Shown: one piece after another, positions 47,106 through 64,000 of the stretch
Position numbering within the stretch: position 1 is the first letter of the stretch
How the letters are laid out: the number at the start of each line of letters is the position of its first letter
From: Lepidodermella squamata
Taxonomy: Eukaryota > Animalia > Gastrotricha
Direction of reading: 5' to 3'
Length of the DNA: 64,000 nucleotides
NCBI GenBank assembly: GCA_047495785.1
Contig: JBLDXI010000038.1
Location: 844,882-908,881, forward strand
Translations under genes and position numbers: made by a program
The notes under the pieces: model-generated
Told to the model about the DNA's origin: nothing
Database searches by the model: none
The model's input: only the letters and a program-made list of their open reading frames with translations

Positions 47106-50100
47106 TTATTTTCCGTTGTTACCATCATTCAATGAATGAGCACTGCCGTCCTCGGAACTTGAGTCGTTGCCACCGGCCGGCGCAGAAGCACCTACTGAGC
47201 TGGAACTGTTCAACGAGGGAGTCACCATTGACGGCCGCATTGAAGCTGAAGAAGGTGCGATCGACCGCCCGCCAATCAAAGTGCTGCCAACTCTGAGTTA
47301 AAGTAAAAAAGCAACATCATCCAACTTGACCATCATTAAAGAAATCAGCAAAACTGAGCGTTAGCCAATTAAGCCTTTATTGTCGGTCAGCTATGAAGAC
47401 CGAATAATCACCTCGAAAGCATTAAAGGGGTCTAGTCAATATCGACGTGGGAAAGCTATCGCAGTTTCAAACACGCTCATTCAACTAAATTGCGATAACG
47501 CGCTTTCCAAATAGTAATTATTTAGGTATTATCTTGTTGAAACGCAAAAAACCGAGATGAGCAACTCATAGGCTGAAAAGATGCAGGATAAGTCTTAGTG
47601 TTTTAAAGGCAATGTCTGGGTAAGAATAAAACATTTTCCGACGAAAAACATTGAAAAAACGAAAACTCGGCGGGGAAGCGATGACGACCGCTACGCCATT
47701 AACTAGGGGCGTGTCGATCACGATCGCGCGGCAGCACAAGAAGATTGGTTAGTAGAGCCATGTAAAAAGCGATCTAGTCATTCACGCATCTAGGTCATAA
47801 CAGTCAATTTGAAAGGGCCAGGAAACATACGCGGAGGACGACGAGGAAGCTGGTGGAGGCGACGCGCTTCCGCCCCCGCCACCCAATTCGGTGAGCAACT
47901 CAACGTGCCTATGCGCAAATATGCCGATAAGATTATATCAGTTGATATTATTGTTCATCCTAACAAAGCGTTAGGAAATTTGTCACAGAGAATCGCGGCA
48001 ACGGCATATTACGAATCGCATTTAGGTATCTCACGGGGCTGCTGGTTTTCGATATTCTCTAAATAAAACAATTCACAGAGGTCAACTCACTTTTTTCGAA
48101 GAGTCTGGAGTTCGCGTTCAAGCGCTTCTTTCTGCTCCTGAGCTTCCTCGGCATCACGCTGTGCCTTGCGTTTTTGCTGTTGCAACTTCTCGAGCTTTTC
48201 TTCCGACTCTTCGGCCTCTTTCTTCATTTGGCGAATCCGCTGTTGAGCCTTCTCGGCGGCATCTCGATATTGCTCGGCACCACGGCGTTCCTCTTCTACG
48301 GAGGCTTGCAACTCACGCATACGCCTATCAGCCTTACGCAAGCTCTTTGTCGCCACTTGCCGTTCACGCTGCTCTTTACCGAGTTGCTCCTCTAACGAGG
48401 CAATCTTGGCCTCCAATGCAGCGATGCCACTCTTGTTGCGATTCGGCGATCGAAGCTGCTCTTCTGCTTCGGCAAGTTTGTTGCGAAGCTCGCGAGATTG
48501 ACGCTCGGCACTGTGAAGCACCGCCTCCAATCGTTGGGTGTTCGAACGCTCGGTGGACAAATCAGCCTGGAGTAGGTCAGCAGAAGCCTGAGCTTTCTTC
48601 GCCCGCTCGTTTGCCGACTCTGTGTTGGCCCGTTCTTCTTCAAGTTCGTCCTCGAGTTCGTGCAGACGGGCATCAATTCGCCGTTTATCTTCCAACAAAG
48701 CAGCTTTAGCAGCGCTTGCAGCCGTAAGTTCGTCGCTCAATTCCCGAGCTTCTTTTTCAGCCTGACGCCGAGCACGCTCAGAGGCAGCCAATTCTTCACC
48801 AAGACGAGTCGCAGCTGCTTCAGCGCCTCGCAAACGTTCTTGAACGTCACGAGCAGCCTGACCACCAGATTCCTTCAAAGCACGCAGCTCCGCGAGCTCG
48901 CGCTCTTGCTCCTTCATCGACTGCTGGATCTTGCGCAATTGCTTGCCCAACTCTTCTTTGGCACGTGATGCTGATTCCAGAGCAACCTCGGCGTCCTTGA
49001 GGTCTGACTCGGCTTTTTTCTTGGCAGCGACTGCAAGGCCACGCTGTTTACGCTCCTCCTCCAGCTCGGTCTCCATCTGTTGAATTTGGCGCATGAGCGC
49101 ACGGCGTCGCTCTTCGGCCTCTTCGTCCTTTGCCGACAATTCTCTCTCGTATTTATCCTTCAGCGCCTGCATGTTGACTTCTAAGCGCAGCCTCTCATCC
49201 TCAGCAACTTGTAACTCATCTTCGAGCTCGATTACTTTCTGCTTTTCCTCTTCAAGCTCAGCAACCATAGCCCGTCGAGCCGTCTCAAGCTCAGCTGCTG
49301 AGCGACCGGCGTCGTCTTTTGCTGACATTACAGCATCAAACTCTTTTTGAAGCAAATTAAGCGCACGCTCACGCTCCTCGCCGTTCGCTCGCAATTCATC
49401 GAGCTCTCTTTGCAAGGATAAAATTCGCGATTCACGTTCCCGACATTCTCTTTCGGCGTTGTCACGTTCGGCCGTCAAACGCTCCGCAATGACTCGCTTT
49501 TCTTCAAGCAATTGATCGAACTTCTTCTGCTTCTTATCGAGCTGCGATGTAGCGTTGCGTTGGTTCTCCAATGCGACAGTAGCATCTTCGAGTTCCGAAG
49601 CCAGCTGGCGCCGAGCACGCTCGAGTTTTTCATTAGCCGACGCCAGCTGATCGACACGAACCTGCAGAGTTTCGCATTCTTTTGCAGTGCGACGACGGTC
49701 TTCAGCAGCCTGCTCAGCAGCAGCATGTCTCTCATCGGCACGGCGCTTAGCTTCGGCCAACTGCAAGTTCAAATTAGCCAGTTGCTTTTGCAGAGATTCG
49801 ATTTCAGCCTCAAGTTCATCAACACGCTCTTTCTGGTCATCGCGCTCCTGTTCGATAGCGCGTAACGAGGCAACCAGTTGCTGCCGACCGCGAGCCTCCT
49901 CCTGAGCAGCCGCCAATTGGGTTTCTAGCGATGAGGCTTTGCCTGCCGATTGGGTGGCTCGACGCTCCGTTTCTTCCAGCAGGCGTTGCAAACGCTCGAG
50001 TTCAGTATTGGTGCGTTGTTTTTGCTCGACAGCGTCCTTTAATGTGCGTTCCGCTTCTGAGAGGCGATGACTCAGCTCCGCAACGCTGGTTTCAGCCGTC

Positions 50101-53100
50101 TTACGGCGCTTTTCAGCTTCTTGGCGACTCGTCGTAAGTTGCTTCAATTCAGCAGCCATGTCAGCAGCTTCGGCTTCCAGAGTGGTTTTTGCCTTGTTAG
50201 CGGCAGCGAGCATGCGACGAGCGTTCTCGAGTTCCGCCGACAAATGTTCGGCCGCTTGCGAGTGTTTCGCACGCAGATCTTGCACCTGCTGCTCAGCACG
50301 GCGCGTTGCTGCCTCAAGTTCATTGCGCAGTTGCTGCAATTCACTCTCCCGTTTCTGCAACATTTCCTGGCCCATGGCACGGTTGTCGGTCGTTTCGATA
50401 ATCTCGAGCCGCAGAGCTTCCAACTCTTCGTTAAGATCACGCCGCTGTTTCTCGGCTTTATCGCGAGCCTCCCGTTCAACATCCAGATCTTCCTGTGCCT
50501 CCTGGAGCTGAAGCTCTAAATCACGCAGGCGTTTGGCAAGCGCCGCTTTCTCGCTGAGCTCGTCTTCGATGCGCTGCTGAGCGTTGCGTAATTCCGTCTC
50601 TCGAGACTGCAACAGATTATGTGATTCATCGGCAGCCGATTTGCGATCTGCAAGCTGATCTCGAAGGTCAGCCAGTTCGCCTTCGAGACGGCGGCGAGCC
50701 TTCTCGGTTTCACCGCGAGCCTGCTGCTCTTGAGCAATGCGAGCCTCCAGTTCACGAATTGTCTGTTCATATTTCGTTTTCAACTTGTTGAGCGACTTGC
50801 CTCGGTCCTCTTCTTCAGTGAGCTGCGTGGCTAGCTCTGAGAGCCGGTCTTCGAGGGCCTTTCGCTCGCGAGTGACACGACCAGCAGTATCTTGGGATGC
50901 TGCTAGGTCTTGCTCAAGTTGTCGGCATCTCTGTTCGGCGGCAGCTTTTTCAAGCTCGGTCTTCTGACGAGCTCGTTCCTGTTCTTCAAGCTCTGCTTCA
51001 AGGTCTTGGATATTCTGTTGCAGACGCTTGCGATCAGCAGCCATTTGTTGACTAGCAGCCTCTTCATCGGCAGCACGAGTTTCAGCTTCGTGCAGAAGTT
51101 CTTCCAGTTCCTGCTTTCGAGCAGTTAAACGAGCGCGCGCCTCTTCAGCTTCGGCACACAACTCCTGCTCAGCGTGAAGCTGATCGCTCAGCTGTTGTCG
51201 CTCCTCACACGTGCTAAGGAAGCGTCGTTGGACCTCTTCAGCTTCAACGCGGAGCCGCTCGAGTTCGGCTTTGACGCGCTTGAGCTCTTCCTCCTTAACA
51301 GCCAGCTTTTCTTCTTGATTAGCAACCGGTAGGAGAGGCTTAACTTTCGTAAACAAGCGCCACCAGGTCCAATTGCGAAGCTTCAAGTAAGCAGCGCCGT
51401 TGCGTTGAATGATGCGAACAGCATTGAGTTGTTGTAAACGCCTTTGGTGCTGCCGACGAGCCAGGCTGGCACGTGAAAGGGCTTGAAAGCGTACCATCAA
51501 AGTCGTCAGTTTTGTGTCACGCTCAGCTTCCAGGGATGCCAAGACACCAGCGCGCAGGAAAATTTTAGACTGGCCGATGCGATATAACTGCTCGCTCAAG
51601 TCGAGCGCCTCCATCATCTTCTCGCACGCCTTTTTCGAGTCCATGAAACCCTTCGGAATCGCATCGGGTGTAAGAATTTCGTATCGCTGTTTGAACTCCT
51701 GGAATAGGATGCGGTTAGGAAAGCCTTGGCGACAGATGCGGATGCCCTCGAGAACTCCGTTACACCGCAGCTGATCAAGCACCAGGTGAGCGTCTATGCG
51801 CCGGGGTTTTTTCTCCCGATTTGGTACGATACAGCGGACGAAGTGGGGGCTTGTATGGCCGAGGGTATCCATGAGCTTTTGCAACTGTTCTTTGTAAGTT
51901 TGCCCGACGGTACGAAACATGCCTTTGCGAACACGACCAGCGCTAACATCGGGGACCGCAGAGCCAGGTCCTGCAGCGGCCTGCATTGTACCAAGGCCAA
52001 CTATTTCAGCGTCTTTCCAAAGTCCGGCAACAAGAGGATCGGTCGAGGCTTGCAAAAGCGATACAACGTTTTCGTTGAGCGGGTCCATGTTCTTAATAAG
52101 CCAGTCAGCGGCAGTGTACTCGACTTTGGCAGCATAATGCACGATTATGAAATCGGTGTTAGCGCGCATGTCGGGCTTGGAAAACTTCGGATGGCCGGTG
52201 TGAGTTGCAAATAGCTTTTCGACGAAAGTGCGATCAGTGGCCTTGGGGAAGAAACACTGATCGTCGAGAAGAGCCAACACACCCATAGGCTAAAGTCAAA
52301 AAATAATTGAATGGTGTCATCTGAATCACGTACAAATAAATTACCTTGTCAATAAGGTCGATAGTAGGCTGCAAATCCAGGCCGAAATCGATGAAATTCC
52401 ACTCAATGCCTTCCCGCTTGTATTCCTCCTGCTCTAGGATGAACATGGTGTGATTAAACAGCTGCTGCAGACGCTCATTTGTGTAATTGATGCACAATTG
52501 CTCGAATGAATTGGTTTCGAAAATTTCGAACCCAGCAATATCGAGAATTCCGATGAAGGCATGACCCGCACGCATTGTGGCGCGGTGCAATGATTTATTG
52601 ATGCGTTGCACAAGCCATCTAAATAGACGATCGTAGATCGCCTTTGAAATGGCTTCACACGTGAATTCCGCTTGTTCTTTGGTTTGTGATCGCGTCACTG
52701 TGTCACGGCCCACTTTGATACGCGGCTTCAAAAACGCCTGCGTTAACTGGGTGACCGGCATGCCCAACAAATGGCATGCTTTTTGAGCAGCGGTGTTATC
52801 TGGCAAAGTCGCTTGATCAGAATTTTTCTCTTGGTTGAATTTCATATTGCCGAGTTGTAGTACAGCTGAGACTACTTTCAGGATCGAAAGCTGCTCGTCG
52901 GTCGATATGCCCATAACGTCCATGGAAGCTAGTGTTTCCGACAAGGGTTGGGAATCGTCAATATCGGGTACCGAGACAAATCCATTCGTCAAAAAGCGGT
53001 ATTGGTCAGCAGACTCAAGCAACAAAGCGGAACGCTGCTCAGGTGAAGCGCCCGACATCAGCTGGTAGAAAATGTGGAAAGAGCGCTCTGACTGAGCTTG

Positions 53101-56100
53101 GCGAATGGCTCGGGACTTCTCCAGCAAGTATGTCTCAAGGTCAGCTCCGGAAATGAAGCCCGAATTGCTGTCGAACATGATGCGGATAAATTTGCCAAAT
53201 CTAGAGGAATTGTCGTTTTTAACGGTTTTAGCGTTTCCGAACGACTCGAGAATCGGATTGGCTTGAAGAAGTTGATGCTCCAATTCACCCTATAAAATTA
53301 ATGACAAACCTTTAATACTGAGAATTCTATCATGTATGAATCTTGCGAGCATCATATAATGTGCGAAAAAAGCAGAAATGATGGTTTGCTGTTGGAATTT
53401 ATCTTCCAAAGCAGCTGTTAAAGTGCACAGAAGCGTTCAAATACTACCGTGGTTAAAGAGTGATAGAATCTATTTGGCTTCGGTGAAGCAACTTACCACA
53501 TGATGACGCGAGAGGTGCTAAAAATCGAAGCCAATTAGTCAATTAAGCAAAGCTGAAAACATAATTTAATAGCCAAACATGCTTATAAACTCTTAGCAAT
53601 GAAAATTCTTCGCAGCTGCGAGAGACAATTATTTTTGTAATTGACTTTCACGAAATTAAAAATGACATTCTCTTTTGCAAATTGAATCCCATTGAGTTGA
53701 ACGTATACCGAATAGAAAGAGCTATCCTTTAGAGGGTATGCTTTCGGTCACATAATTTTTTATTTGATAATTTTGCACAATTTATGTTCACCTGAGGCTA
53801 ACTTATTGGTAGTAGGAAAACAGGGAGATTTCGCCAAATTTCCGAACCGAATTTTTTCCCTATATTCATCGCCATAGCAAAGTCTGAAACTGGCGTCAAT
53901 TCAATAAGTGTACCATTTTGTTCTCGCTGCTGAGACAATTTTGAATTCTAGTGAACCACTCAAAGCAACTCAGCTAACACTTGCTAAGAAAGCCACACTT
54001 TGATAAGCATTCTATGGAATACTGCTAATCCGAAACTAAAATCAGCAACAACGCCGCTGAAAATCTGTATCATGCCAACTTACAGCTGACAATGATGGTT
54101 GCGCCATACTCGATTTCCTTGGCTAAAATATTTGGCAATGCCCATTATTAGTTGTCTTATCATTTTCATTCTCTCATTTCTTCAGTTAGACACTTTTTCA
54201 AGCTGGCAGGTAGCAACTCCTGATAACTTACCACTAGCTGTTCCTTTGCAGCATTGGCAATACCGCCAGACTGTGCTCCTGAGGTGGCAGCGCTGGTCGG
54301 AGTGCCGGGTGCGGTGCCGCCGGCAGAAGATGGTCCTCGCGCTAGCGGTTGCTGACGATGAGAGGCGGCGACATGAGCCAGGTACTGTATGACTTTCTTC
54401 GTGTTTTCCGTTTTGCCAGCGCCAGACTCACCGGTGCAAAGAATCGACTGGTCTTCGCGGTTCTGAAGCATGGCTCGATAAGCGGAGTCAGCAACAGCAA
54501 AAATGTGGGGCGGAACTTCATGGCGTTTCTTGCCCTTGTATGACTCGACGATTTTGTCAGTGTAAATTGGCAGGCGAGCGTAAGGATTCACAACCGCGCA
54601 AAACAGTCCGGAATATGTCTGCGATTAGGTAAAAAGATGGACGCATTAATGTCAAGTTTTTCAATCATTTCTCTTTGTCAATTATTTCGCAGGCCGGCGT
54701 GCTTGAGAAGCGCACGTCTGCAAACACTTGTTGTGTCAACGACACACGTACGCGCAACTGTACATGACGCGCATACTCCACTTGACAGTATCAAGTTCAC
54801 ATTACATTATTCTTTACGGCAGCGACGGAAAATGCGAGAGCATCCGGTGCAGGGAGCAACGAGATTCATCTTGACCGCAGCAGTGCAAACAACTCTTTGC
54901 CTTTACTTCCGTGAACACGGTTCTAACAGCTCCTAAAAAGACATAATAGCGCTGCTCGAGCAAATACCCAAAGGGTGTAATTGAGCGCAAATAAACGCAG
55001 GAAACCAAGCAGCTAAATACAACTAGTATCTTATTGATAATATACATTGCGCTGGCATGAGAATGGAACTTTGAATAACGAACGCACACTCGTTGGTGCC
55101 AATCGCAAAAACAACACTAGGAAGCGCGAATAAATGCTGGCACAGTTATCCCGAGAAAACGAAGAATTTACTAGTAAGACCATGTTGGATAGCGCAGCAC
55201 GGCTAAACAATTATGCCCACAAGGATAACAATAGCAAAATAACGGCTCGAACATTGCGAATGCGATTAGTTCAACCGCAAAAATCCGATTATTAATATAC
55301 CCAAAGCGCCGACCTGTACTCAAAATGAGGCTACGCATCCACTCATTTTCGCTAATCATAACAAAGATAAACATTCAAAATAAGCACCAATGCAAAATTG
55401 TTTCTCAATTGTTTCGACTGTCTTTGCAAGGTATCGAGGCGGGGAACTAGCTTATTAATAACTCGCTTAGCGCTTTATTTCTTTATCATTTTATTCGTCA
55501 TTATCATCGCAAAGATCAACAACAGCATTAAGCATCTATTGTTCGCGGCAACTTTCGGGGAAACTACCGAACTAAACGTGGCGAATGGACAGAATAGCTT
55601 GGTCATTTTGCCTCGTAAATAGAACCACCGTCACAAAATAACGCACGGTGATGGCGAGTGCGCTAGCGTCTTGGCCGGCGGTGACAAATAGCCAGCCCGA
55701 CAGGCGAGCGAGTTACCGAGCCGTTAATGCTATTTAGGGCTACCGCATTCGGGCGGTTCTACCTATGCCGCAGCATCACGAGCGGCGCTTCAAGACACCC
55801 CGACAGACATTGCACGCATTGTTTTACTTGGTACTTGATGCCGGGGCGCAATGGCTCTTTAGTTAACGCAGGATAATAAATATAATGTGTGGTAGATAAG
55901 TTACGTGTCCCGGAATGATAAATAGTCATTGGTTGTTCGTGTATATTAGCATGCGAAAATACACATACAAGCTGTATGTATTACAACGTAGGATCGCAGC
56001 AGCAATATAACTATGCCAGTGCATTACGCAGGGCCGTGGCGGTATCACTACACAGAACTCAACACTGCCTTATCCATCTTAGCGCGTCTTTTTAATAGCG

Positions 56101-57044
56101 CTAAACTACAACAAACTCGCTCCAGCAAAACCAAGCTTGCTGCTTTTCACATAAATGATTGCCATTGCTAACACCCATTTTTATTTCGCCAAGACCGCGG
56201 CAGAAGCAGACATCTCGCTGTAATGATTGCAGCAAAGCGCGGTTTTTCCAGAGCACCTGATAATCAATACTCAATTGCATCGGGAGTGACTAGTCTTTTG
56301 CGATGAGACATTCAGCGGCGATGAGTAAGCCGTTAATACAAAAATAAACAACACGTCTGGCGAGAAAAACGCACGTGAAGCGTCACGTTCGCAAAACACA
56401 TTCACAATAAAAATATTTCATCTGCAAAAAATAACCAAGTTATGACCGAAAAATAAACGTACGTAGATCAAATCTGAGAAATAGCGATCCTTGATGTTGT
56501 GCAAGACGGATGCGTCATTGAGGCAGGTCAAGTCAGCCATGTCCTCAACTTTCGTAAATTTGGGTGGGTTCATTTTTTGCACCTCTGATTTCGCAACACG
56601 GTAGGATTTGCCAGTCTCGACGGATTCCACGACATATTCTTCGCCAACTAGATGAAAAATCAAGCTCCATTGTGAACCACAAGAAATAAACTTCTGAAAT
56701 GTATTACCATCTTCGCGAATACTCGCTGCGACGAATCCTTGTGAGTCATGAGGGACCCACACCAACTTTTTCGCGGTCCATGCAGCCTGAGCTGCCGGGT
56801 CATTTACCAAGCTGGTATGATTGTCGGCGCGCAGGCATCGCATGGAAGCAGCCAGATCATCATCGGCGGTATTAGCACTCGCGCTCACAGGCGTTTGTGG
56901 TGGAGGTGCTGCCACCGCTGTTGGCACCGGTGCTTTGGAAATAGCAGCATTCGGAGTTCCTCCAATGGGCTTGTTCAATGTTGAACTTGGGGGTTTCGGC
57001 ACGGCAGCCCCATTTTGTGTTTTGTTCACCAAGGATGGCCTCAT
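47106..57044 (-). CDS. MYH10: Non-muscle myosin II heavy chain (zipper/MYH9-10 class)
   Basis: LVWVP SH3-like region; [13 protein letters not shown]; [17 protein letters not shown]; [11 protein letters not shown]; DIAGFEIF; [22 protein letters not shown]; [12 protein letters not shown]; long heptad rod; Ser-rich tailpiece exon ending 47106. Confidence 0.97.
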
Positions 57045-60000
57045 TTAATAGAGCCTCTGGGGTAGTCGGCCGTTGGTTGGAGTTCAAATTTAAAAATAAA
57101 ACTAAACGAGCATCACAATAAAATAATAAAATCGTAAACAGTAAACAATTAAGAATTAAGCGCATTATGTAGGTAACGAATTTCGGAAGGTTCGCTGAAA
57201 AATTATTCACAAGGGCTACAAACTCTCTTCCATATGGTTGCACGGCAGTCAGGTCTGTAGTGTGAATAAAATCAAAATTCTTCATCAAGTGATACCACAA
57301 GCGCAGCCAACTGCTATTAAGCCAATTCAGCGCATGTGTGTGTCTGCGAATAGCATACCTGTACAAATTATGAGCTGCTATATATCCGTGACGCATGGTT
57401 GCATGCGAGTTTTAAACGAGCTAATGAAATGCACGACATTTGCATTTACACATTTACAGATTAACTTGCTTGTATGACGAGACTAGAACAATAATTGTGA
57501 TACTATAACACAAGTGCAAGTATCTCCCCTACATTTATAACAGGTGTTCATATATCTTTCTTCTTTCCCTTAATAACAGTGATCGACTCAGACGAACCAT
57601 AAACCGATTCAAGCAAGTTTTTAGTCACTGTCATCTATTTTCTTTTCCCCCCATTCTGTCTGTCTTTTTCAAGTCGTGATACAGGCCTGATCGTGCAATA
57701 TTGAAATGCTGTGGAAATGACGAGGACTAATTGTAACCACAAGAATAAACGCAATCGGAATAATTGAAAACCTCGACTTGGAGTTTCAAAAAAACCAGAA
57801 AGGCTGAGAGCAATTGTAAGGCAAGGATAGCCCCCTTCAGCGATTATCAACGCCCTTACTTTGCTATGTGCTGAAGCTTAAGCGAGTAGAATAAAATGTT
57901 CACGGGCCGTACGCTATCTCCTAGGTGCCTGCTGTTTCAAGGCGTGATGCCTCACTTGAAAGTGTAGGCCGACCTGACGGTAGCTCTTCTACGTGGCCGA
58001 CAAATACCGCAGCACGAGGGATGCATTTGTTCAGTAAATACCAGAGATTAAGTCGTTGGCAATAAAATAAGCTGTTTAAAAAGTTTTGGTTATTAACCGG
58101 GTATAGTGAAACGGATCGAACACCATATTTCGAGGAAGTCATCAATAACAATGCAATCAATGGTGAAATAGATAAGATTAGATTGTCGACTTGTCGACAC
58201 AGCTAAATGGATAGATCAAGAAATAGTGATCATTGACCATACTCTTTCTTCATTTCCATTTCCGGTTCTTTTTAACCGAGGCGATCATAGAATCTTCATC
58301 GCGCGGAAATAAATACCGATCATGTTTATAGCCTACAGATGCCTTAGATTAATTGTGTCGATAACCTAAAACAGAGAAAAGGGAAGGTCAATAGGAAGTG
58401 ACAAGACCAAGGGCTAAGGGACTTAGAGAGTAACTGCATCTGAGAGCAATTCCTCTAGAGTAAACACGGTTCATCTCCATCATCTACTAAAAGTTAAAGA
58501 CTCCAATTTACTCCTGGAATCTGCAATAGACTGGTGATTACTCTAAGAGCAACAATCATGAAGCGAAATAGGAATCGGCAACTGCAGTCACCTTATTCAC
58601 ACAACATATGAGCATACAATTGACATGAACAGATTAAAGAAAGCATATAGCATAAAGCATCCTAACTTCTGAATCTGCATTTTTACACCGATCACAAAAA
58701 CCCGGTAATATAGCAATTAAATGAAGAGACAAGATTCAAGGGTTCAGCTGACAGGATGATAAGAATTTACGAGTTTTCCTGCTATTTCCTACTTCCTACT
58801 TTGTCTTGCTAACCTCAGGTTTTTCGATTGCTATAGGTGCTAAGGCTATCTGGATTCTACTTTTTTGTTGGAAAACGCTATCTGCTCATTGAAAGTGCTA
58901 GCAACCTGCAACCTGCAATTAATTAAGGAGACACTTAGAAAGCTACGTCGTTTTTGTAATGGAAGACATGAGGCAGTTTTCGAATTCGTCTGACCGGTTA
59001 CGAGACAGAAAACCCACAGAGAGTATACCTATAATACTGCAGAATAAATTGGGATTATGCATTTGGTAAACTAGGCAACAGGGAACTTTGAAAACCATAA
59101 GGTTTTTTAGTAAAACAAAAATCTCACCAAGCTGCAGTAATCGCAGAACTTTAAATTCCAACAGCCTAACAGCTTCTACTGGGCGGACGTTAGTAATCTT
59201 TGAAAAAAGTCGCGGGTTTTCTGAACTAGTTATTTTAAATTCAAATTCAATAAAAAATCAAATAATAAATTCATTAACAAATTAAAATTACATTTTTTAC
59301 GAAAAGTATTTTAGGCAAAATCTTGAAGCTTTTAGCCGCAGTGAATGAATGGCCACAATTTTCTTCGATCGTGGCGCAGCATTTTCTTACGCCGCTGCGC
59401 TGCGCTTGCAGCGTGGCGTAATGGGCAGGTCCCATTGTCTTGCGTTGTCTTGCGGAAAAAAGGAGTTTCATGTTTTATATAGAAAAGGTCTAGTAAGAGC
59501 CAGCGGCTAGAAAAGCCAGCGGCCAGCTTGAAATATCAGATCTCCCATTTAAAAGAGTCAAGAGTTCGAGTAGAGCAGCGGTCAGATGTTCGTGGCATTG
59601 AGTAAGTCACCCAGCCCTAGCTAGACAATCAAAGCATGCAGTCAGCGTGACGATGCGTTTTCAATGTGCTCACTGCATGACACCAGCGAGTATCGGCGCG
59701 TTCGATCAGCTGTTCCCACAACTCAGTTTTACAAGCTCTCATCGGAATTCTTCATTCAGTTTTATTGTGCTCAGTTGCGTATGTCAATTAGTCTCTAGAG
59801 GTATGATTTATCTGCGCCGTCAAGCTAAAATATCTTAGTTTTAGTACAGACCACGTTGATGTCATGCTGAATTGAATTGATAACTTCGAACTCGCACGAG
59901 CGCTGACATTTACGTAACCGCAGTGGCCATCTGTAATAATCGAATCAAAACTTTAACTCTAACTGTGAGTTAGCGAGTGCATTTGTCCTTCGTTTTAAAG

Positions 60001-61951
60001 AAGTTATACCAGTGAGTCAAAGCCAACACTCATTTAGCAAACGAGCAACTTGAGAGCATAGAGAACAAAACTTATGTCTCTCTGTGCTTTTTATGGTGCC
60101 TTTCTGTGGTTGAGCTCAAATGCTCAGGTAAGGATCTTTCAACGCGGATAATGATGAATGATAAGCATCTACACTTCTGGGCTTATTGACGATTCTGAAC
60201 TCCGAATTTCTCTCGGTTCTATCACTCTTCTAACGAAAAATATGCAAACTCAAAATCCAAATTGGAAGCACAATTGCGCTCGATATATTAATCTCCAAGG
60301 AATTCAGCCGGTAAATTTCTGAGAAGATCTAGAAGTTCAAGATTATTCATGTGGAATAAAATTAACACAAACTAATTGGATTGTGGCTGATGGCTGATGT
60401 CAATATTATTCCATTTGCGAAGACCTCTCAGGGTAGCTTCATCTCTCAGCATTATGCTTCTGATCTCTCTAGATGCGTAAAGGTTAGATCTCGGAACGCG
60501 TACCCTTAGAGGAATTAGGTTTCTCATACAAAAGCGTTCTTCTGATAATAGTTTTTCGAATACAAAACTAAACTATTACTGATGATAAGGTATTGAATAG
60601 AGGTTAGCTATGTCGTAGAGAAGCTTTCTTCCGATATTACTTGCTCTTTATTAGATACGAAACTCACATGTCATTGATCACTGATCACTGATCAGTTATT
60701 AATTTTAACTCAAAGATAACACAGCGTGATTATCATTGAGAAAAGAGTAGGTACATAATTCTGTAAATAAGTCTAGAATGACTCCGGAGATTCCTCAAGG
60801 AGCAGCAATCTTTAGCTATCTATAAATCAGATGATTTGAAACCTATAATTCATGTGTTCGGAGTTCGGATGTTGAACAAAAATAAACAATGTAACCAATG
60901 TTGAACATTGTTCTCAACAACGGCAACCGTGCTTTTGACCTAGAAAAAATGTGGATGTTGAGAGTGTGTCATCTGCGAATCATACGCACAAGAGAAGCGG
61001 GAATTGTAGTCTGCAATCACATTTCAATGGCATTGCAGGCGTCGTGTGACAGCAGTATATTTACTCTCAGTTGACCGAATGAAACGATGATCAGTGAAAA
61101 TCAGAAGTCTTCGACACAGGACAATTGATCGACTACTATCGAACGGTGTGAATAAGTGTTACAGTGATAAAACACACATCAGTGACGCGGCGTTCTGCTC
61201 TGATCATCGTATGCTGGTGCCTACTAATGTTGAATTGAAGGCGAGTGGGGCATTGGAAAAGTATCGTATGTGAATCAGAAGCGCAATCAGAGTCAATTTA
61301 GCTATATGCAATCTCATTTGTTAACTGCAATGACGCAGGCTTCAGTGATTTTCAGTGAAATACTCAGCTGACTAAATCATTGAAAGACATCCCACAATGT
61401 CGCGGCTTCGTTCGTCTAGCTCATTTTGAAACGGAAATTGTCTCAATCGTTCTTTGCATATCAGTTGTCAGTGTGATTATGCACCGCTCACTGATACCGA
61501 TGGAGTGATGTTATGAGCCTACCGTCTCGCCAGTGGCGCAGTTAATACTCCGCTGCTTCTCTTCTCACATTGTAACTGCGAGACGGAGCGAGCAGGGCGA
61601 GCGGAGTGGGGTAGATCTCACGCGGCTTTGTTGTTCTACCTCCTTTTGAAACAGAACCCTCCCTCAATAAGTTATTCTCGTGTGGCGCAGTTAATACTCC
61701 ACTCCGCAAGGCTTCCTTAGTTTTCAAACAGGACTGCGCGACAACCGTGTAACAATATGCTGCTCTCGTCGAAGTTTTCGCCTCTCACTCTACACAAAAT
61801 CTGTCGATGAGGGTAAACCCAGCACGAGCAATAAGACGTCTGTCCTCTAAATTAGGCGAGACCTAATTTGCATAAATTTGAATATTCATAGAAATAAAAT
61901 TGATTAGAATAAGTATTCAAAAAAGTTAAAAAGATTTGCAAGAGATTAACA

Positions 61952-62057
61952 AGGGTTAGGGTTAGGGTTAGGGTTAGGGTTAGGGTTGGGGTTAGGGTTA
62001 GGGTTGGGTTAGGGTTAGGGTTAGGGTTAGGGTTAGGGTTAGGGTTGGGTTAGGTTA
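61952..62057 (+). repeat. (TTAGGG)n tract 1 with TTGGG/TTGGGG variants
   Basis: Direct inspection. Confidence 0.97.
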
Positions 62058-62115
62058 ATTACCAGACGGGAAGCCTAAGCAACCCCGGCATAGAAGCTCT
62101 AGCAATCCCTTTCAC

Positions 62116-62173
62116 GGGGTTAGGGTTAGGGTTAGGGTTAGGGTTAGGGTTAGGGTTAGGGTTTAGGGTTAGT
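62116..62173 (+). repeat. (TTAGGG)n tract 2
   Basis: Direct inspection. Confidence 0.97.
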
Positions 62174-62315
62174 TTCTAGTTGAGTACCAGACGGGTCAAT
62201 TTTGAAATGCCCCGGCAAAATTGGCCCTGGCCTCAAGAAATGAACTTCGCGGGTTCAAAACCTCTAAGGTTGGTTTGATCAGTAACACTGAACAAATTTC
62301 AAACCCATATTTGAT

Positions 62316-62491
62316 AATTACCCATAGCCAATAGACTTGTTCACCGAGCGAGCTCAGTTACCCACTGTCATTGGAGATGTTCATTATCAGGTGAAGAAAT
62401 TCCTCCACCAAATAGGGACAATTACCCACTATCCTTGACTTGTTCACTACCCGGAGGCAGTTACCCACTGTCTTGGATGTGTTCATTGTAC
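62316..62491. repeat. Imperfect 104-bp-period duplication with TTACCCA subrepeats
   Basis: AATTACCCA..GACTTGTTCAC..CAGTTACCCACTGTC..TGTTCATT starting at 62316 and 62420. Confidence 0.75.
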
Positions 62492-62785
62492 TTGGGATCA
62501 ATGCCCATTGTTGAAAAATATATAATTCTAAGTAAAGTGCTATAGAGGTTCGCCAATAATCAGACCGGTTTCGCTATTTGGCTAAGATAGCTCATCAGTG
62601 ATTTTTGAGCCTCTGTAGAAGAATGATTTTATTCTGCTAAATGGACCGTTTATATAGGCCGCTGGCCACGTTTTTCATCATGGCCGCGCTGCGCCGCATG
62701 GTTGATTCACGTGAATGTACGTCCACGTGAACGCATGATTGCGTGATGATTTGCGTGAAAAAAGTATTCAGCGGAAAAAATAAGA

Positions 62786-62870
62786 AAAATTCTTGCACGG
62801 TGGCTGGAGTTGAACCAGCGATCTTCCCAGAAGCGGGCCTGATCATCACCACTACGCTGTGGTGCCGTGC
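62786..62870 (-). ncRNA. tRNA-derived Pol III-type unit, copy 1
   Basis: Box A-like CAGCGTAGTGG, box B GGTTCAACTCC within a perfect T-arm, T5 run just downstream. Confidence 0.65.
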
Positions 62871-62926
62871 TTACAAACTCATACCCATAAAGCGACAAAA
62901 AATGATTTTGCGTATTTTTCTCTCCG

Positions 62927-63013
62927 AAAAAATCTTTGCACGGTGGCTGGAGTTGAACCAGCGATCTTCCCGGAAGCGGGCTTGATCATCACCACTACGC
63001 TGTGGTGCCGTGC
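62927..63013 (-). ncRNA. tRNA-derived Pol III-type unit, copy 2
   Basis: Same boxes, T6 run; 143-bp period. Confidence 0.65.
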
Positions 63014-63069
63014 TTACAAACTCATACCCATAAAGCGACAAAAAATGATTTTGCGTATTTTTCTCTCCG

Positions 63070-63145
63070 AAAAAATCTTTGCACGGTGGCTGGAGTTGAA
63101 CCAGCGATCTTCCCGGAAGCGGGCTTGATCATCACCACTACGCTG
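63070..63145 (-). ncRNA. tRNA-derived unit, copy 3, 5'-truncated by telomeric repeats
   Basis: Matches copy 2 up to 63145, then joins GGGGTTAGGG directly. Confidence 0.6.
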
Positions 63146-63206
63146 GGGGTTAGGGTTAGGGTTAGGGTTAGGGTTAGGGTTAGGGTTATTAGGGTTAGGT
63201 AAGGGT
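63146..63206 (+). repeat. (TTAGGG)n tract 3
   Basis: Direct inspection. Confidence 0.97.
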
Positions 63207-63285
63207 GAAACACGTCCCATCTCCGCTGATGTTGCCTTCTTGTTTGCTACGATCTGCTGAATGCCCCTCCAAATACTGTCGATGT

Positions 63286-63999
63286 TCAGGACAATGCTAC
63301 ACTCCTCGCTTGCTCCAGAATCTCCTCGATCTTGGTTTCAAGTTCCTGCGCTGTAACCTGCTCATCTCCCCATTTCCAGCCCGTTTTATCGATCGCTGTT
63401 CTCAGGTTGTTGTTTTCTGCTCTCGCTTTTTTTATCTCTGCCTTCTCACACTTTTCTGTTTGTTCCTTCGATAGTTCGCCTCGAATATCACTCAGATCCC
63501 CCAAAATTCTGGTGATTTTTTTGGCTGAAATTTTTCGATTTGTTTTTCGGGTTTCCTTGATGATTTTGTCGCTGTGTTCATCTACCACCCTCTTCATGCT
63601 CTGATCGCTGAATTTTGTTACACCGAAAATCTTTTCGAAGTTGTTCGCAATGTTCTGTTCTGTTGCTGTTCTCTTGTTGTTTTTCTCCGCCGCTGCTACT
63701 CTCGCGCTGGATTTGACTGTGGCTATAAACTCGCCAAACTTTTCGGCATAGACTTTTTCCCGAACGCTACCTCTGGCCTCGCTGTTCTCTCCATGCCTTA
63801 CCCCTTCTGCACTGCTGCTCGCACTGTTCGCTTCTCTGCACTGACCGGGTTGTGCCGGATGTTTCGGCCACATTTTTGGCCTGATTGCGTTAGGTGCGCT
63901 GCTATAACGGGCCTCGCTTTCAAGGTTGAAGTATCTACGCTCAGGCTCTGTCTCAAAACGGTTTGCTACCTTTTGGTGGTAATTTTGATGGAAAATTTG
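63286..63999 (-). CDS. Intronless K/E-rich, probably coiled-coil ORF, open to the window edge; possibly mobile-element encoded
   Basis: Frame stays open from 63999 to the stop at 63286 (at least 237 codons); no recognised domain. Confidence 0.5.
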   Translation of the reverse strand, partial: QIFHQNYHQKVANRFETEPERRYFNLESEARYSSAPNAIRPKMWPKHPAQPGQCREANSASSSAEGVRHGENSEARGSVREKVYAEKFGEFIATVKSSARVAAAEKNNKRTATEQNIANNFEKIFGVTKFSDQSMKRVVDEHSDKIIKETRKTNRKISAKKITRILGDLSDIRGELSKEQTEKCEKAEIKKARAENNNLRTAIDKTGWKWGDEQVTAQELETKIEEILEQARSVALS

Positions 64000-64000
64000 A

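Follow-up and report, generated by a model that had tools for sequence, protein, structure and literature searches.

The window analyzed here, a stretch of DNA of 64,000 nucleotides, terminates at position 64000 with the end of contig C38 (908,881 b). Within the terminal 2 kb of this contig there are three TTAGGG tracts on the plus strand, all co-oriented, with the G strand running 5' to 3' toward the contig end. The three rightward G-rich tracts described in the first-pass annotation of this DNA were thus found where it had placed them. Tract 1 (61952-62054) contains ~17 repeats, tract 2 (62116/7-62172) contains ~9 repeats, and tract 3 (63146/7-63199) begins with ~7 perfect repeats, after which a degenerate stretch continues to ~63205 and may belong to the module beyond it. 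Using the telomere 12-mer with at most 1 mismatch, 29 matches were found in the window versus 0.1 expected. The tracts separate three minus-strand modules, denoted here as A, B, and C.

The Broken Repeat and Module A

The last ordinary chromosomal sequence before tract 1 is a truncated copy of a dispersed repeat (59381-61954), of which ~2.6 kb is present. This repeat has 86 matches genome-wide, in both orientations and at internal sites as well, and the best of these (C38:174190-176756) is 99% identical. The depth of sequencing run X1 over the repeat was determined to be 300-2600, relative to 75 for the unique flank. The copy in the window is broken at ...ATTAACAAGG, which is the start point of tract 1. 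Seven other copies run on as AGG|AAATCGACGG..., whereas the window reads AGG|GTTAGGG, and the three nucleotides AGG are common to the broken repeat and the telomere repeat at the start of tract 1. Because tract 1 directly adjoins this broken copy, it is read, from the sequence comparison, as a de novo telomere addition, i.e., a healed break.

The end of tract 1 is a degenerate tail, GTTAGGGTTGGGTTAGG, at ~62038-62054, which is followed by TTAAT at 62055-62059. The same tail is identical in all copies of the element family F1, and it is also present in two internal tandem F1 copies with no telomere tract in front of them. Judged from these copies, the tail would belong to the F1 element of module A and not to the telomere tract. 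Its sense strand reads ATTAACCTAACCCAACCCTAAC, a short reverse-complement telomeric stretch that is encoded at the 3' end of the element. The 3' ends of family F4 and of module C also begin with degenerate repeats. Module A (62055-62115, minus strand) is a 3'-terminal stub of F1 with a length of 61 nt that is cut after ...CCCTTTCAC and then capped by tract 2. Longer F1 copies on contigs C20 and C21 match it with 97% identity at their 3' end and run past the cut. Two further copies at the left end of C13 (5.3 and 8.95 kb), with a variant of the F1 3' end, encode a reverse transcriptase (RT).

The first-pass annotation had reported a repeated motif, TACCAGACGGG...CCCCGGCA, following tracts 1 and 2. 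This motif is indeed present at 62060-62090 and 62185-62217, with 9 occurrences across the 121-Mb genome versus 0 for a reversed control. It constitutes a 3' stem-loop box that is found in module A and again in module B; the apical helix of the stem-loop differs between families yet stays paired. A hammerhead ribozyme inside this box was considered and rejected because the CUGANGA core is absent there. More than 120 matches to the box were obtained from metagenomes. These are judged to be chance bacterial matches because, among 80 of them, neither telomere repeats nor hammerheads were present and the GC content averaged 63%.

The Non-coding Module B and the ORF1 Fragment of Module C

The 3' domain of module B (62173-62542, minus strand) is that of a non-coding element of family F2 and contains the conserved stem-loop box. 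The segment from 62117 to 62605 is 81% identical to C54:4288699-4289128, a copy that lies 13 kb from the right end of C54 in the same orientation as module B and that is cut and capped 12 nt to the 5' side of its own hammerhead. No hammerhead had been seen in this region by the first-pass annotation, and in this respect it has to be revised. A type-I hammerhead motif is located on the minus strand at 62543-62620, approximately 390 nt from the 3' end of the element, with the core CUGAUGA...GAAAC-CGG-UC at 62563-62598. Cleavage is predicted between 62563 and 62562, and stem III is shrunk to a palindromic CCGG.

Only direct inspection of the sequence, together with pattern searches and tests of covariation, revealed the hammerheads. 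The pattern gave 34 matches in the genome and none in the control. Most of these (28) are near a contig end and point inward, 3 are in inverted blocks within ~1.6 kb of a contig tip, and the other 3 are either far from an end or on contigs outside the set whose lengths entered the count. The core does not vary among 11 distinct copies. Covariation is seen at 3 pairs of stem II, which is 100% paired, and at 2 pairs of stem I; overall, pairing holds in 96% of the alignment cells, compared with 19-47% when the partner is slid. At the Rfam gathering score nothing was obtained in the window or in 141 kb of the other ends. At a lax threshold the hammerhead is matched only by RAGATH-1-hammerhead (16.0 bits) and HH9 (12.4 bits), both below the gathering score, and the stem III hairpin is absent. 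At E ≤ 10, the region from 61500 to 64000 returned chance-level matches in addition to a weak antisense-tRNA-like match that is described below. With its core and helices I and II in place, the motif is assigned from its sequence as a type-I hammerhead with a minimal stem III in the style of Penelope-like elements (PLEs).

A linker (62621-62783, minus strand) connects the hammerhead to the 5' part of module B. The segment from 62559 to 62740 is 76-78% identical to hammerhead-bearing, non-coding modules of family F3 at the left end of C9 and the right end of C21. The 5' part itself (62784-63145, minus strand) is a tandem array of 2.5 units of 143 bp, and the copies are 98% alike. As had been proposed, the array is truncated exactly at tract 3: the last copy consists of 79 of the 143 nt and stops within the unit at 63145, directly adjoining GGGG-TTAGGG. 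Each unit contains a tRNA-like sequence of 76 nt that is followed by a run of T6, and an A-box-like string, CAGCGTAGTGG, and a B-box-like string, GGTTCAACTCC, can be read directly from the sequence. The minus strand of the unit folds into a three-arm, cloverleaf-like structure (-31.4 kcal/mol, z = -3.3) with acceptor-, D-, and T-like arms but with a 4-nt loop at the place of the anticodon loop. The plus strand of the array is the source of the weak match to an antisense-tRNA-like Rfam model.

The unit is nevertheless not recognized as a tRNA gene. ARAGORN found no tRNA in the window, the Rfam tRNA model did not match even at E ≤ 10, and the 7-nt anticodon loop is missing from the fold. The array is unique in the genome, and a scan of metagenomes with the tRNA-like unit gave 0 matches. 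It was suggested previously that the array represents a Pol III RNA cargo. Each of the 2.5 units has its own T6 run and spacer, and thus transcription by Pol III would already terminate within the first of them. In addition, the array takes the place where the sister elements carry an unrelated 178-bp satellite. Both observations speak against a Pol III cargo.

Module C (63200-64000, minus strand) is the 3' end of an ORF1-bearing element that runs to the contig end. It contains a 3' UTR (63200-63285), a stop codon (63286-63288) that is 86 nt from tract 3, and an open frame (63289-63999) of 237 codons, 195 of which are counted from the first ATG. The minus-strand ORF that had been noted ~80 bp from tract 3 is therefore present. 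Its description as coiled-coil-like is plausible but unproven; a single-sequence AlphaFold model is mostly helical, with one helix of 47 residues, at a low-confidence pLDDT of 53. A sequence search for relatives in the genome returned only the ORF itself, the Atlas gave no usable match, and no relatives were found among 5.8 billion proteins within a length window of 130-415 aa. Comparison of the ORF with the ORF1 family of the telomeric elements gave an E-value of 2.3e-5 with hhalign. With hmmsearch (E = 2.8e-8) it was the sole match from outside the family among 1139 ORFs. From these profile matches, the ORF of module C is assigned to this ORF1 family as a distant member. Its conserved core lies ~339 nt from the 3' end of the module, compared with ~336 nt in family F4. 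By analogy with families F4 and F5, an RT would be expected further upstream of the ORF1 part, past position 64000.

The depth of module C in the one informative public run (X1) was found to be 6.6, relative to 75 for the flank and 77 for module B, or approximately one eleventh of the single-copy depth. The Logan contig of module C continues for 680 nt beyond the window, and it passes into telomere repeats just where the assembly does, with the orientation unchanged. The low depth raises the question of an assembly artifact, above all where module C meets tract 3, in which a few reads from elsewhere (a different end, a different strain, or a contaminant) would have been linked via TTAGGG. Module C has no second copy in the assembly, it is interrupted by the contig end, and the Logan contigs fail to bridge the tracts, all of which would agree with such a join. 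We regard it as quite unlikely, given that tract 3 is only ~54 nt and is therefore easily spanned by single reads, that the independent Logan contig meets the telomere repeats in the same manner, and that the ORF falls in the ORF1 family of the telomeric elements. It follows from the latter two observations that, even if misplaced, module C would be a low-frequency copy of a telomere-attached element. Because none of the Logan contigs passes through a tract, support for the three junctions, and for the placement of module C at the C38 end, comes from the assembly.

Element Families and the Reverse Transcriptase at Other Contig Ends

Relatives of the modules were found only within ~35 kb of contig ends and in one polarity. 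At seven contig ends, 30 of the 31 tracts are co-oriented with the end, and all sense-strand features have the 3' end toward the centromere. Every closed module at these ends begins with one of five conserved 3' ends. The lengths of the modules range from 65 to 8950 nt in F1, from 382 to 14300 nt in F2, from 189 to 10003 nt in F3, and from 508 to 4690 nt in F4. Within each family the 3' ends are fixed, and the 5' ends are cut at different places and capped. On C41 there is a stub of ~20 nt with an exact element 3' end. Mapping of the module relatives has thus borne out the single polarity and the variable truncation anticipated for these elements, with fixed 3' ends in copies from 65 nt to 14.3 kb.

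The confinement to contig ends bears on whether the tracts could simply be internal, telomere-like sequence of a dispersed transposon such as a MITE or a Helitron, with a contig that merely stops in repeats. A dispersed repeat is indeed found directly to the left of tract 1. Short internal TTAGGG runs occur elsewhere in the genome, and a single TIR-flanked, degenerate, telomere-like tract is located at 1672-1855 of the window; both can be counted in favor of a transposon. However, TTAGGG is absent from the break point in the remaining copies of this repeat, the module families are restricted to contig ends in one polarity, and C13 and C41, which carry like chains, end in long terminal TTAGGG arrays. 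The transposon explanation is consequently given very little credence. Internal copies of a TTAGGG-containing MITE or Helitron with fixed ends and TIR/TSD were not found, and the dispersed repeat is simply broken at tract 1.

The window itself contains no RT, as the first-pass annotation had stated for this region, and the contig stops at 64000, short of the next 5-20 kb in which that annotation had proposed to look for one. RT ORFs are found, however, in copies of F1, F2, F4, and F5 at the other ends, where they point inward. Among these copies are those on C13, whose 3' end is a variant of the F1 end, and those on C9, in which the F2 box occurs in a variant form. The RT gives a weak match to RVT_1 of Pfam, and the DKG, PKxHK, RPIV, QxxGxxMGS, and YRDD motifs are invariant in 19 RT sequences. 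The nearest RT clusters are annotated as DUF8422/HTH_animal/RVT_1 and are commonest in Rotifera. The contigs of the nearest foreign RT relatives (P0001, P0009, and P0015) are short and contain no telomere repeats and no hammerheads. A profile search of the PDB gave generic RT and TERT matches with no clade placement, and a phmmer search of the PDB with one RT gave only noise. Pfam detected no GIY-YIG domain in any long ORF of the ends. A distant RT+GIY-YIG relative was detected; in tblastn searches against the seven ends, the best E-value for the GIY-YIG part of P0018 was 0.33 versus 1e-16 to 1e-23 for the RT part. On the basis of these sequence features, the RT of the sister copies is assigned to a Penelope-like type that is devoid of the endonuclease.

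It could also be asked whether DNA-level processes alone would suffice, namely, breakage and healing, end-joining capture, or recombination and break-induced replication that moves blocks of a tract and its module, with no new reverse transcription at the C38 end. In other animals, subtelomeric blocks are well known to be bordered by interstitial telomere tracts that are co-oriented, and tract 1 is itself a healed break. At the left end of C13 there are duplicated blocks that include the tracts and have identical junction pairs. Some chain segments are thus DNA-level duplicates, and therefore not every module is an independent retro-event. However, modules A and B have 5' junctions that occur on C38 alone, whereas their 3' junctions are typical of the families. 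An exact 3' end and the one orientation in 30 of 31 cases are not expected of random capture, and stubs of 61 nt and, on C41, ~20 nt with an exact 3' end fit better with an aborted synthesis of cDNA. We therefore consider it unlikely that DNA-level processes are a sufficient explanation for this end.

Proposed Origin of the End and Comparison with Known Systems

The most probable interpretation, in which we have good confidence, is that the tip of this chromosome arm was rebuilt by telomere-attached, endonuclease-free Penelope-like retroelements together with their non-coding passengers. RNA-templated extension of the end followed by telomerase capping is, from the sequence, well supported but not proven; that the overhang served as the primer, that the RT was supplied in trans, that telomerase did the capping, and that the events took place in the following order is what we infer from the arrangement. 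The arm would first have broken inside the dispersed repeat and been healed by telomerase, giving tract 1. The G-rich overhang would then have paired with the telomere-complementary tail of an F1 RNA, from which an element RT would have copied only 61 nt before stopping (module A), and telomerase would have re-capped the end (tract 2). A non-coding F2 RNA, sharing its 3' stem-loop box and hammerhead with the RT-encoding elements and carrying a satellite in its 5' part, would have been copied likewise, with a stop inside the tRNA-like satellite (module B) and renewed capping (tract 3). A third, ORF1-bearing element would finally have been added in a minority of the chromosome copies of the sample (module C). 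Repeated extension and capping of inward-pointing, 5'-truncated copies had already been proposed for this region. The confinement to ends, the polarity, the fixed 3' ends, and the endonuclease-free RT of the relatives all support that proposal, with the exception of its Pol III cargo.

A more speculative possibility, to which we assign a rather low probability, is that the system is active now and that the chromosome ends differ between the cells or individuals of the sample, with module C, a divergent ORF1 element, on approximately one eleventh of the copies of this end, and that the tRNA-like units are functional in the passenger of module B, for example as processing signals of the RNase P/Z type or as Pol III units. 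If true, a functional role of this kind for tRNA-like sequences in Penelope-like elements would be one that has not been described before.

The closest counterparts are the Athena elements and Terminons, which are endonuclease-deficient Penelope-like elements at the telomeres of bdelloid rotifers (Gladyshev & Arkhipova 2007, Arkhipova et al. 2017, summarized in PMC8557442 and PMC6431247). They attach to G-overhangs via reverse-complement telomeric repeats, are truncated at the 5' end by telomeric repeats, and form head-to-tail arrays (PMC8557442, PMC6431247). The elements described here resemble them in the PLE-type RT without GIY-YIG, found in sister copies; in the location at chromosome ends with the 3' ends toward the centromere; in 5' truncation, capping by short telomere tracts, and mixed head-to-tail arrays; in the reverse-complement telomeric stretch at the 3' end, the hammerhead motifs, and the helical proteins of the ORF1 type; and in the large size of one unit (14.3 kb, on C9). 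They differ in the telomere repeat, which is TTAGGG here and TGTGGG in bdelloids (PMC7943196). The hammerhead of Athena and the Terminons is a 3'-terminal fold directly upstream of the reverse-complement stretch (PMC6431247), whereas here it is 364-430 nt (F2/F3) or 894 nt (the F1 variant of C13) from the 3' end. Reading the last 120 nt of the elements revealed no CUGANGA core; a separate conserved stem-loop, UGCCGGGG...CCCGUCUGGUA, is located there, next to the tail. The window also differs in that it holds no RT and consists of a stub, a non-coding passenger, and a fragment of ORF1.

Coprina elements are endonuclease-deficient PLEs at the telomeres of fungi, protists, and plants that, in the reference phylogeny, group weakly with the animal Neptune elements (PMC8557442). 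Compared by description only, they are likewise endonuclease-free, telomere-attached, and capped by the repeat of the host, but they are not described from animals in the literature covered. Module B, in turn, is similar to the non-LTR retrozymes, the non-coding, hammerhead-bearing, non-autonomous derivatives of PLEs (bioRxiv 10.64898/2026.07.22.740005, PMC7761336), in that it is non-coding, contains a hammerhead of type I whose stem III is minimal, and shares terminal sequences with RT-encoding PLEs, as a passenger would. The retrozymes are composed of tandem hammerhead units, are dispersed or clustered, and are tied to endonuclease-bearing PLEs, whereas in module B there is a single hammerhead, the 3' end is fixed and attached to the telomere, and the satellite contains no ribozyme.

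The HeT-A, TART, and TAHRE elements of Drosophila are telomere-specific non-LTR retrotransposons (PMC5537684) that also build head-to-tail, 5'-truncated arrays at chromosome ends via end-primed reverse transcription. Unlike the elements of C38, they belong to another RT class, have no hammerheads, and replace telomerase instead of alternating with its repeats. Chromosome healing, finally, is matched by the start of tract 1 in a broken repeat copy, but healing alone leaves the element modules after tract 1 unexplained.

Telomere-attaching, endonuclease-free retroelements are the closest living relatives of telomerase. To our knowledge, such retroelements have been documented in animals almost only in bdelloid rotifers. 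The chain at the end of C38 and its relatives point to the same telomere-attached life style in an animal with canonical TTAGGG telomeres, whose genome holds several element families, non-coding passengers with hammerheads, and very short aborted copies. These families would therefore provide a second, independent setting for the question of how chromosome ends are located by an RT and how they are shared between the RT and telomerase. To this the C38 end itself adds a clean starting point in the form of a young repeat with a healed break, a passenger that carries a tRNA-like satellite, and a terminal module in a minority of the molecules that hints at ongoing activity.

The terminal TTAGGG tracts

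The window (positions 844882-908881 of contig JBLDXI010000038.1, in an assembly of 121 Mb and 151 contigs) extends to the end of its 908,881-b contig. Its position 64000 is thus the contig end, and the distance to it, which the first-pass annotation had wished to see determined, is zero. The three co-oriented TTAGGG tracts recognized in that annotation were found within the last 2 kb, all on the plus strand, at 61952-62054 (tract 1), 62116-62172 (tract 2), and 63146-63199 (tract 3). Their G strand runs 5' to 3' toward the contig end, as it would in a true telomere on the right-hand side. TTAGGG can be identified as the telomere repeat because long TTAGGG/CCCTAA arrays terminate contigs C13 and C41 of the same genome.

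To the left of tract 1, positions 59381-61954 hold one copy of a dispersed repeat. Its 86 genomic matches are found internally and in either orientation, and identity reaches 99% in the best of them. In seven other copies ATTAACAAGG is followed directly by AAATCGACGG, whereas in the window ATTAACAAGG is followed by GTTAGGG. A dispersed repeat that is broken exactly where tract 1 begins is a signature of chromosome healing, and judging from this junction tract 1 would represent healing at a break inside the repeat. The refuting case named in the first-pass annotation, a dispersed element that itself carries TTAGGG, was ruled out here, since the seven other copies continue without TTAGGG.

A degenerate CCCTAA-like tract (1732-1798), with a polarity opposite to that of the chromosome end, is located 62 kb inside the contig between perfect inverted repeats of ~23 nt (GGTAGAAGTGCGCTCTCAGAGGG and CCCTCTGAGAGCGCACTTCTACC). 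The whole feature (1672-1855) could be a hairpin or MITE-like element whose loop resembles telomere repeats. The minus strand carries a class II myosin heavy chain gene at 48087-57044, in which one exon of 1399 aa encodes the entire tail and a portion of the head; RhoGAP and CSN1/RPN7-like genes are found further inside, and this gene content is that of an animal.

Related elements at other contig ends

The left ends of contigs C9, C13, C20, and C41 and the right ends of C21 and C54 were compared over 30-40 kb each (10 kb for C41). With all ends turned telomere-right, 30 of the 31 tracts are co-oriented with the contig end, for which a p of ~3e-8 holds only if the tracts are independent, and some are duplicates. 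The sole reversed tract sits in an inverted terminal block of C21. At the right ends of C21 (L030/L031), C54 (L029), C32, and C46 and at the left end of C20 (L023), the outermost 1-9 kb is the terminal element repeated in inverted orientation. These inverted blocks account for the one reversed tract and for a few reversed hammerheads; the tips may be genuine palindromes or may result from fold-back errors in the assembly.

Immediately distal of each tract, the sequence belongs to one of five families (F1 to F5), each with a conserved 3' end. The 3' end is fixed within each family while the module lengths differ: 65, 3508, 5324, and 8950 nt for F1; 382, 440, 981, and 14300 nt for F2; 189 to 10003 nt for F3; and 508 to 4690 nt for F4. 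One F2 copy on C41 runs for only ~20 nt before the next cap. Polarity and truncation at the TTAGGG junctions, proposed earlier as a check, thus gave one orientation, fixed 3' ends, and variable capped 5' ends, which is what end-primed reverse transcription, often aborted, would predict. Three short F2/F3 modules (C20 left, 382 nt; C54 right, 440 nt; C41 left, 392 nt) end 12-27 nt beyond the hammerhead core on its 5' side, which suggests that a mini-element of ~380-440 nt has its natural 5' end here and was not truncated at random.

Modules A, B, and C

Module A (62055-62115, minus strand) is a 61-nt stub that shares 97% identity with the 3'-terminal 61 nt of longer F1 copies; these copies continue beyond the point where module A is cut and capped. 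The degenerate stretch GTTAGGGTTGGGTTAGGTTAAT precedes all F1 copies, including two internal tandem copies with no telomere tract in front. From its retention in these tract-less copies, the F1 RNA would end in about three imperfect telomere-complementary repeats; such a 3' end of the element RNA is a device of Athena and Coprina (PMC8557442).

Module B (62173-63145, minus strand) is F2-type and lacks any notable ORF. Over its 3' 430 nt it matches, at 81% identity, a copy in the same orientation located 13 kb from the right end of C54. The TACCAGACGGG...CCCCGGCA motif described earlier is present after tracts 1 and 2. A stem-loop box of ~35 nt (62185-62217, minus strand) adjoins the 3' end of the module and is common to module B, F1, and an RT-encoding 14.3-kb unit on C9, with changes that keep the apical helix paired. 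This shared box would be an obvious handle for mobilisation in trans.

The first-pass annotation saw no hammerhead in this region, but a type-I hammerhead motif was found at 62543-62620 (minus strand) from its core pattern and covariation. The core pattern has 34 matches in the genome, nearly all near contig ends and inward-pointing, versus 0 for the control. The catalytic core does not vary among 11 distinct copies. Stem II pairs in every copy, with covariation at three positions, and two positions covary in stem I; where most copies read GCUAC/GUAGC, that of the window reads GCUAU/AUAGC. Rfam returned sub-threshold hammerhead matches only, because stem III is reduced to palindromic CCGG. Such a reduction is a dimer-type design known from Penelope-like elements (PLEs). 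Near the right end of C32 (G000:C32:4488724-4499992), eight cores exactly 1605 bp apart form a tandem array of a hammerhead-bearing unit.

Going 5' in module B, the hammerhead is followed by a linker common to F3 modules and then by a tRNA-like array (62784-63145, minus strand), which consists of 2.5 units of 143 bp and, as reported earlier, is truncated at tract 3. The unit is unique in the genome. Its predicted fold has three arms, with a canonical T arm and, in place of the anticodon loop, a loop of only 4 nt. By direct reading it has A-box-like and B-box-like strings followed by T6, and it was not accepted by ARAGORN or the Rfam tRNA model. The array had been taken as a captured Pol III RNA. 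Its 2.5 units with their own spacers and T runs are not a copy of a single Pol III transcript, and sister F3 modules have, at the equivalent place, a satellite of 178 bp that is unrelated to it and is also cut off by the cap. The array is therefore read as the satellite-type 5' part of a non-coding passenger. In non-coding F3 modules (L028:6041-8250; several L021 arrays), the 5' part is a 178-179-bp satellite of up to 12.4 copies.

Module C (63200-64000, minus strand) is the 3' part of an element bearing ORF1, a frame for a probably helical protein. The ORF noticed earlier beside tract 3 has 237 codons, is open to the contig end, and stops 86 nt from the tract; no relatives were found in public protein data and no second copy in the genome. 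With an F4/F5 ORF1 profile it was the only non-family match among 1139 ORFs (E 2.8e-8), and hhalign against the ORF1 family gave an E of 2.3e-5. By our own arithmetic the conserved core lies ~339 nt from the element 3' end in module C and ~336 nt in F4, which puts the tract 3/module C junction at the 3' end typical of the family. The RT of F4 and F5 is upstream of ORF1, a position that in module C falls beyond the contig end. In four copies (L024:5925-6893, L028:208-1251, L028:8506-9720, and L027:6121-7245), ORF1 of F4/F5 lacks a stop codon upstream of the element 3' end, and the frame enters the CCCTAA tract as an (Asn-Pro)n tail.

The read evidence consists of Logan contigs of public runs, aligned over 5,000 nt; these contigs break inside the tracts, and the junctions thus rest on the assembly. 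The depths in run X1 were 75 for the unique flank, 77 for module B, and 6.6 for module C. The Logan contig of module C extends 39 nt into tract 3 and 680 nt past the window end; module C is thus real sequence that joins telomere repeats with the expected orientation, and its depth corresponds to roughly one in eleven genome copies. Such a low depth suggests either a recent addition at the sub-clonal level or a minor strain within the sample. Run X2, from another organism, contains parts of module B at ~95% identity.

Reverse transcriptases and known telomeric elements

ORFs with weak RVT_1 matches, all inward-pointing, were found in long copies of F1 (C13 variant), F2 (C9 variant), F4, and F5. 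One has 18 relatives in public data, with precomputed domains DUF8422, HTH_animal, and RVT_1; the most distant is an RT+GIY-YIG protein of a canonical PLE. Neighbours in the Atlas belong to these same families, which are most frequent in Rotifera. When 19 sequences were aligned, the motifs DKG, PKxHK, RPIV, QxxGxxMGS, and YRDD showed no variation. The RT part of the GIY-YIG-bearing relative matches every end (E 1e-16 to 1e-23), and its endonuclease part has no match at the same ends (best E 0.33). On these motifs, relatives, and matches, the enzymes are identified as Penelope-type RTs that lack an endonuclease. The C9 unit (G000:C9:17045-31344; L016-L018) lies between two co-oriented tracts. 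It encodes an RT ORF of 666 aa, after which come a frame of 530 aa and an open frame of 2712 aa with faint thioredoxin-like (UGGT-type) matches, and overall it looks like a giant element of the Terminon kind.

The observations of the first-pass annotation are confirmed and its central interpretation is supported: the window end is probably a telomere-primed retroelement chain, built by RNA-templated extension and telomerase capping. The Pol III cargo is unsupported. Among known systems, Athena/Terminon of bdelloid rotifers comes closest and Coprina second; both are endonuclease-free PLEs that become attached to G overhangs, occur in arrays, and are truncated at the 5' end by telomere repeats (PMC8557442, PMC6431247). 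The bdelloid repeat is TGTGGG (PMC7943196), whereas that of this animal is TTAGGG. As a non-coding passenger, module B is comparable to the non-LTR retrozymes, which a 2026 preprint links to endonuclease-bearing PLEs of vertebrates (bioRxiv 10.64898/2026.07.22.740005). A hammerhead directly at the tail, one published defining feature of the Athena type, was looked for and not found at these ends; here a separate stem-loop box adjoins the tail. Because of this arrangement, we file the system as a variant of the known telomere-attached, endonuclease-free PLE kind rather than as Athena proper.
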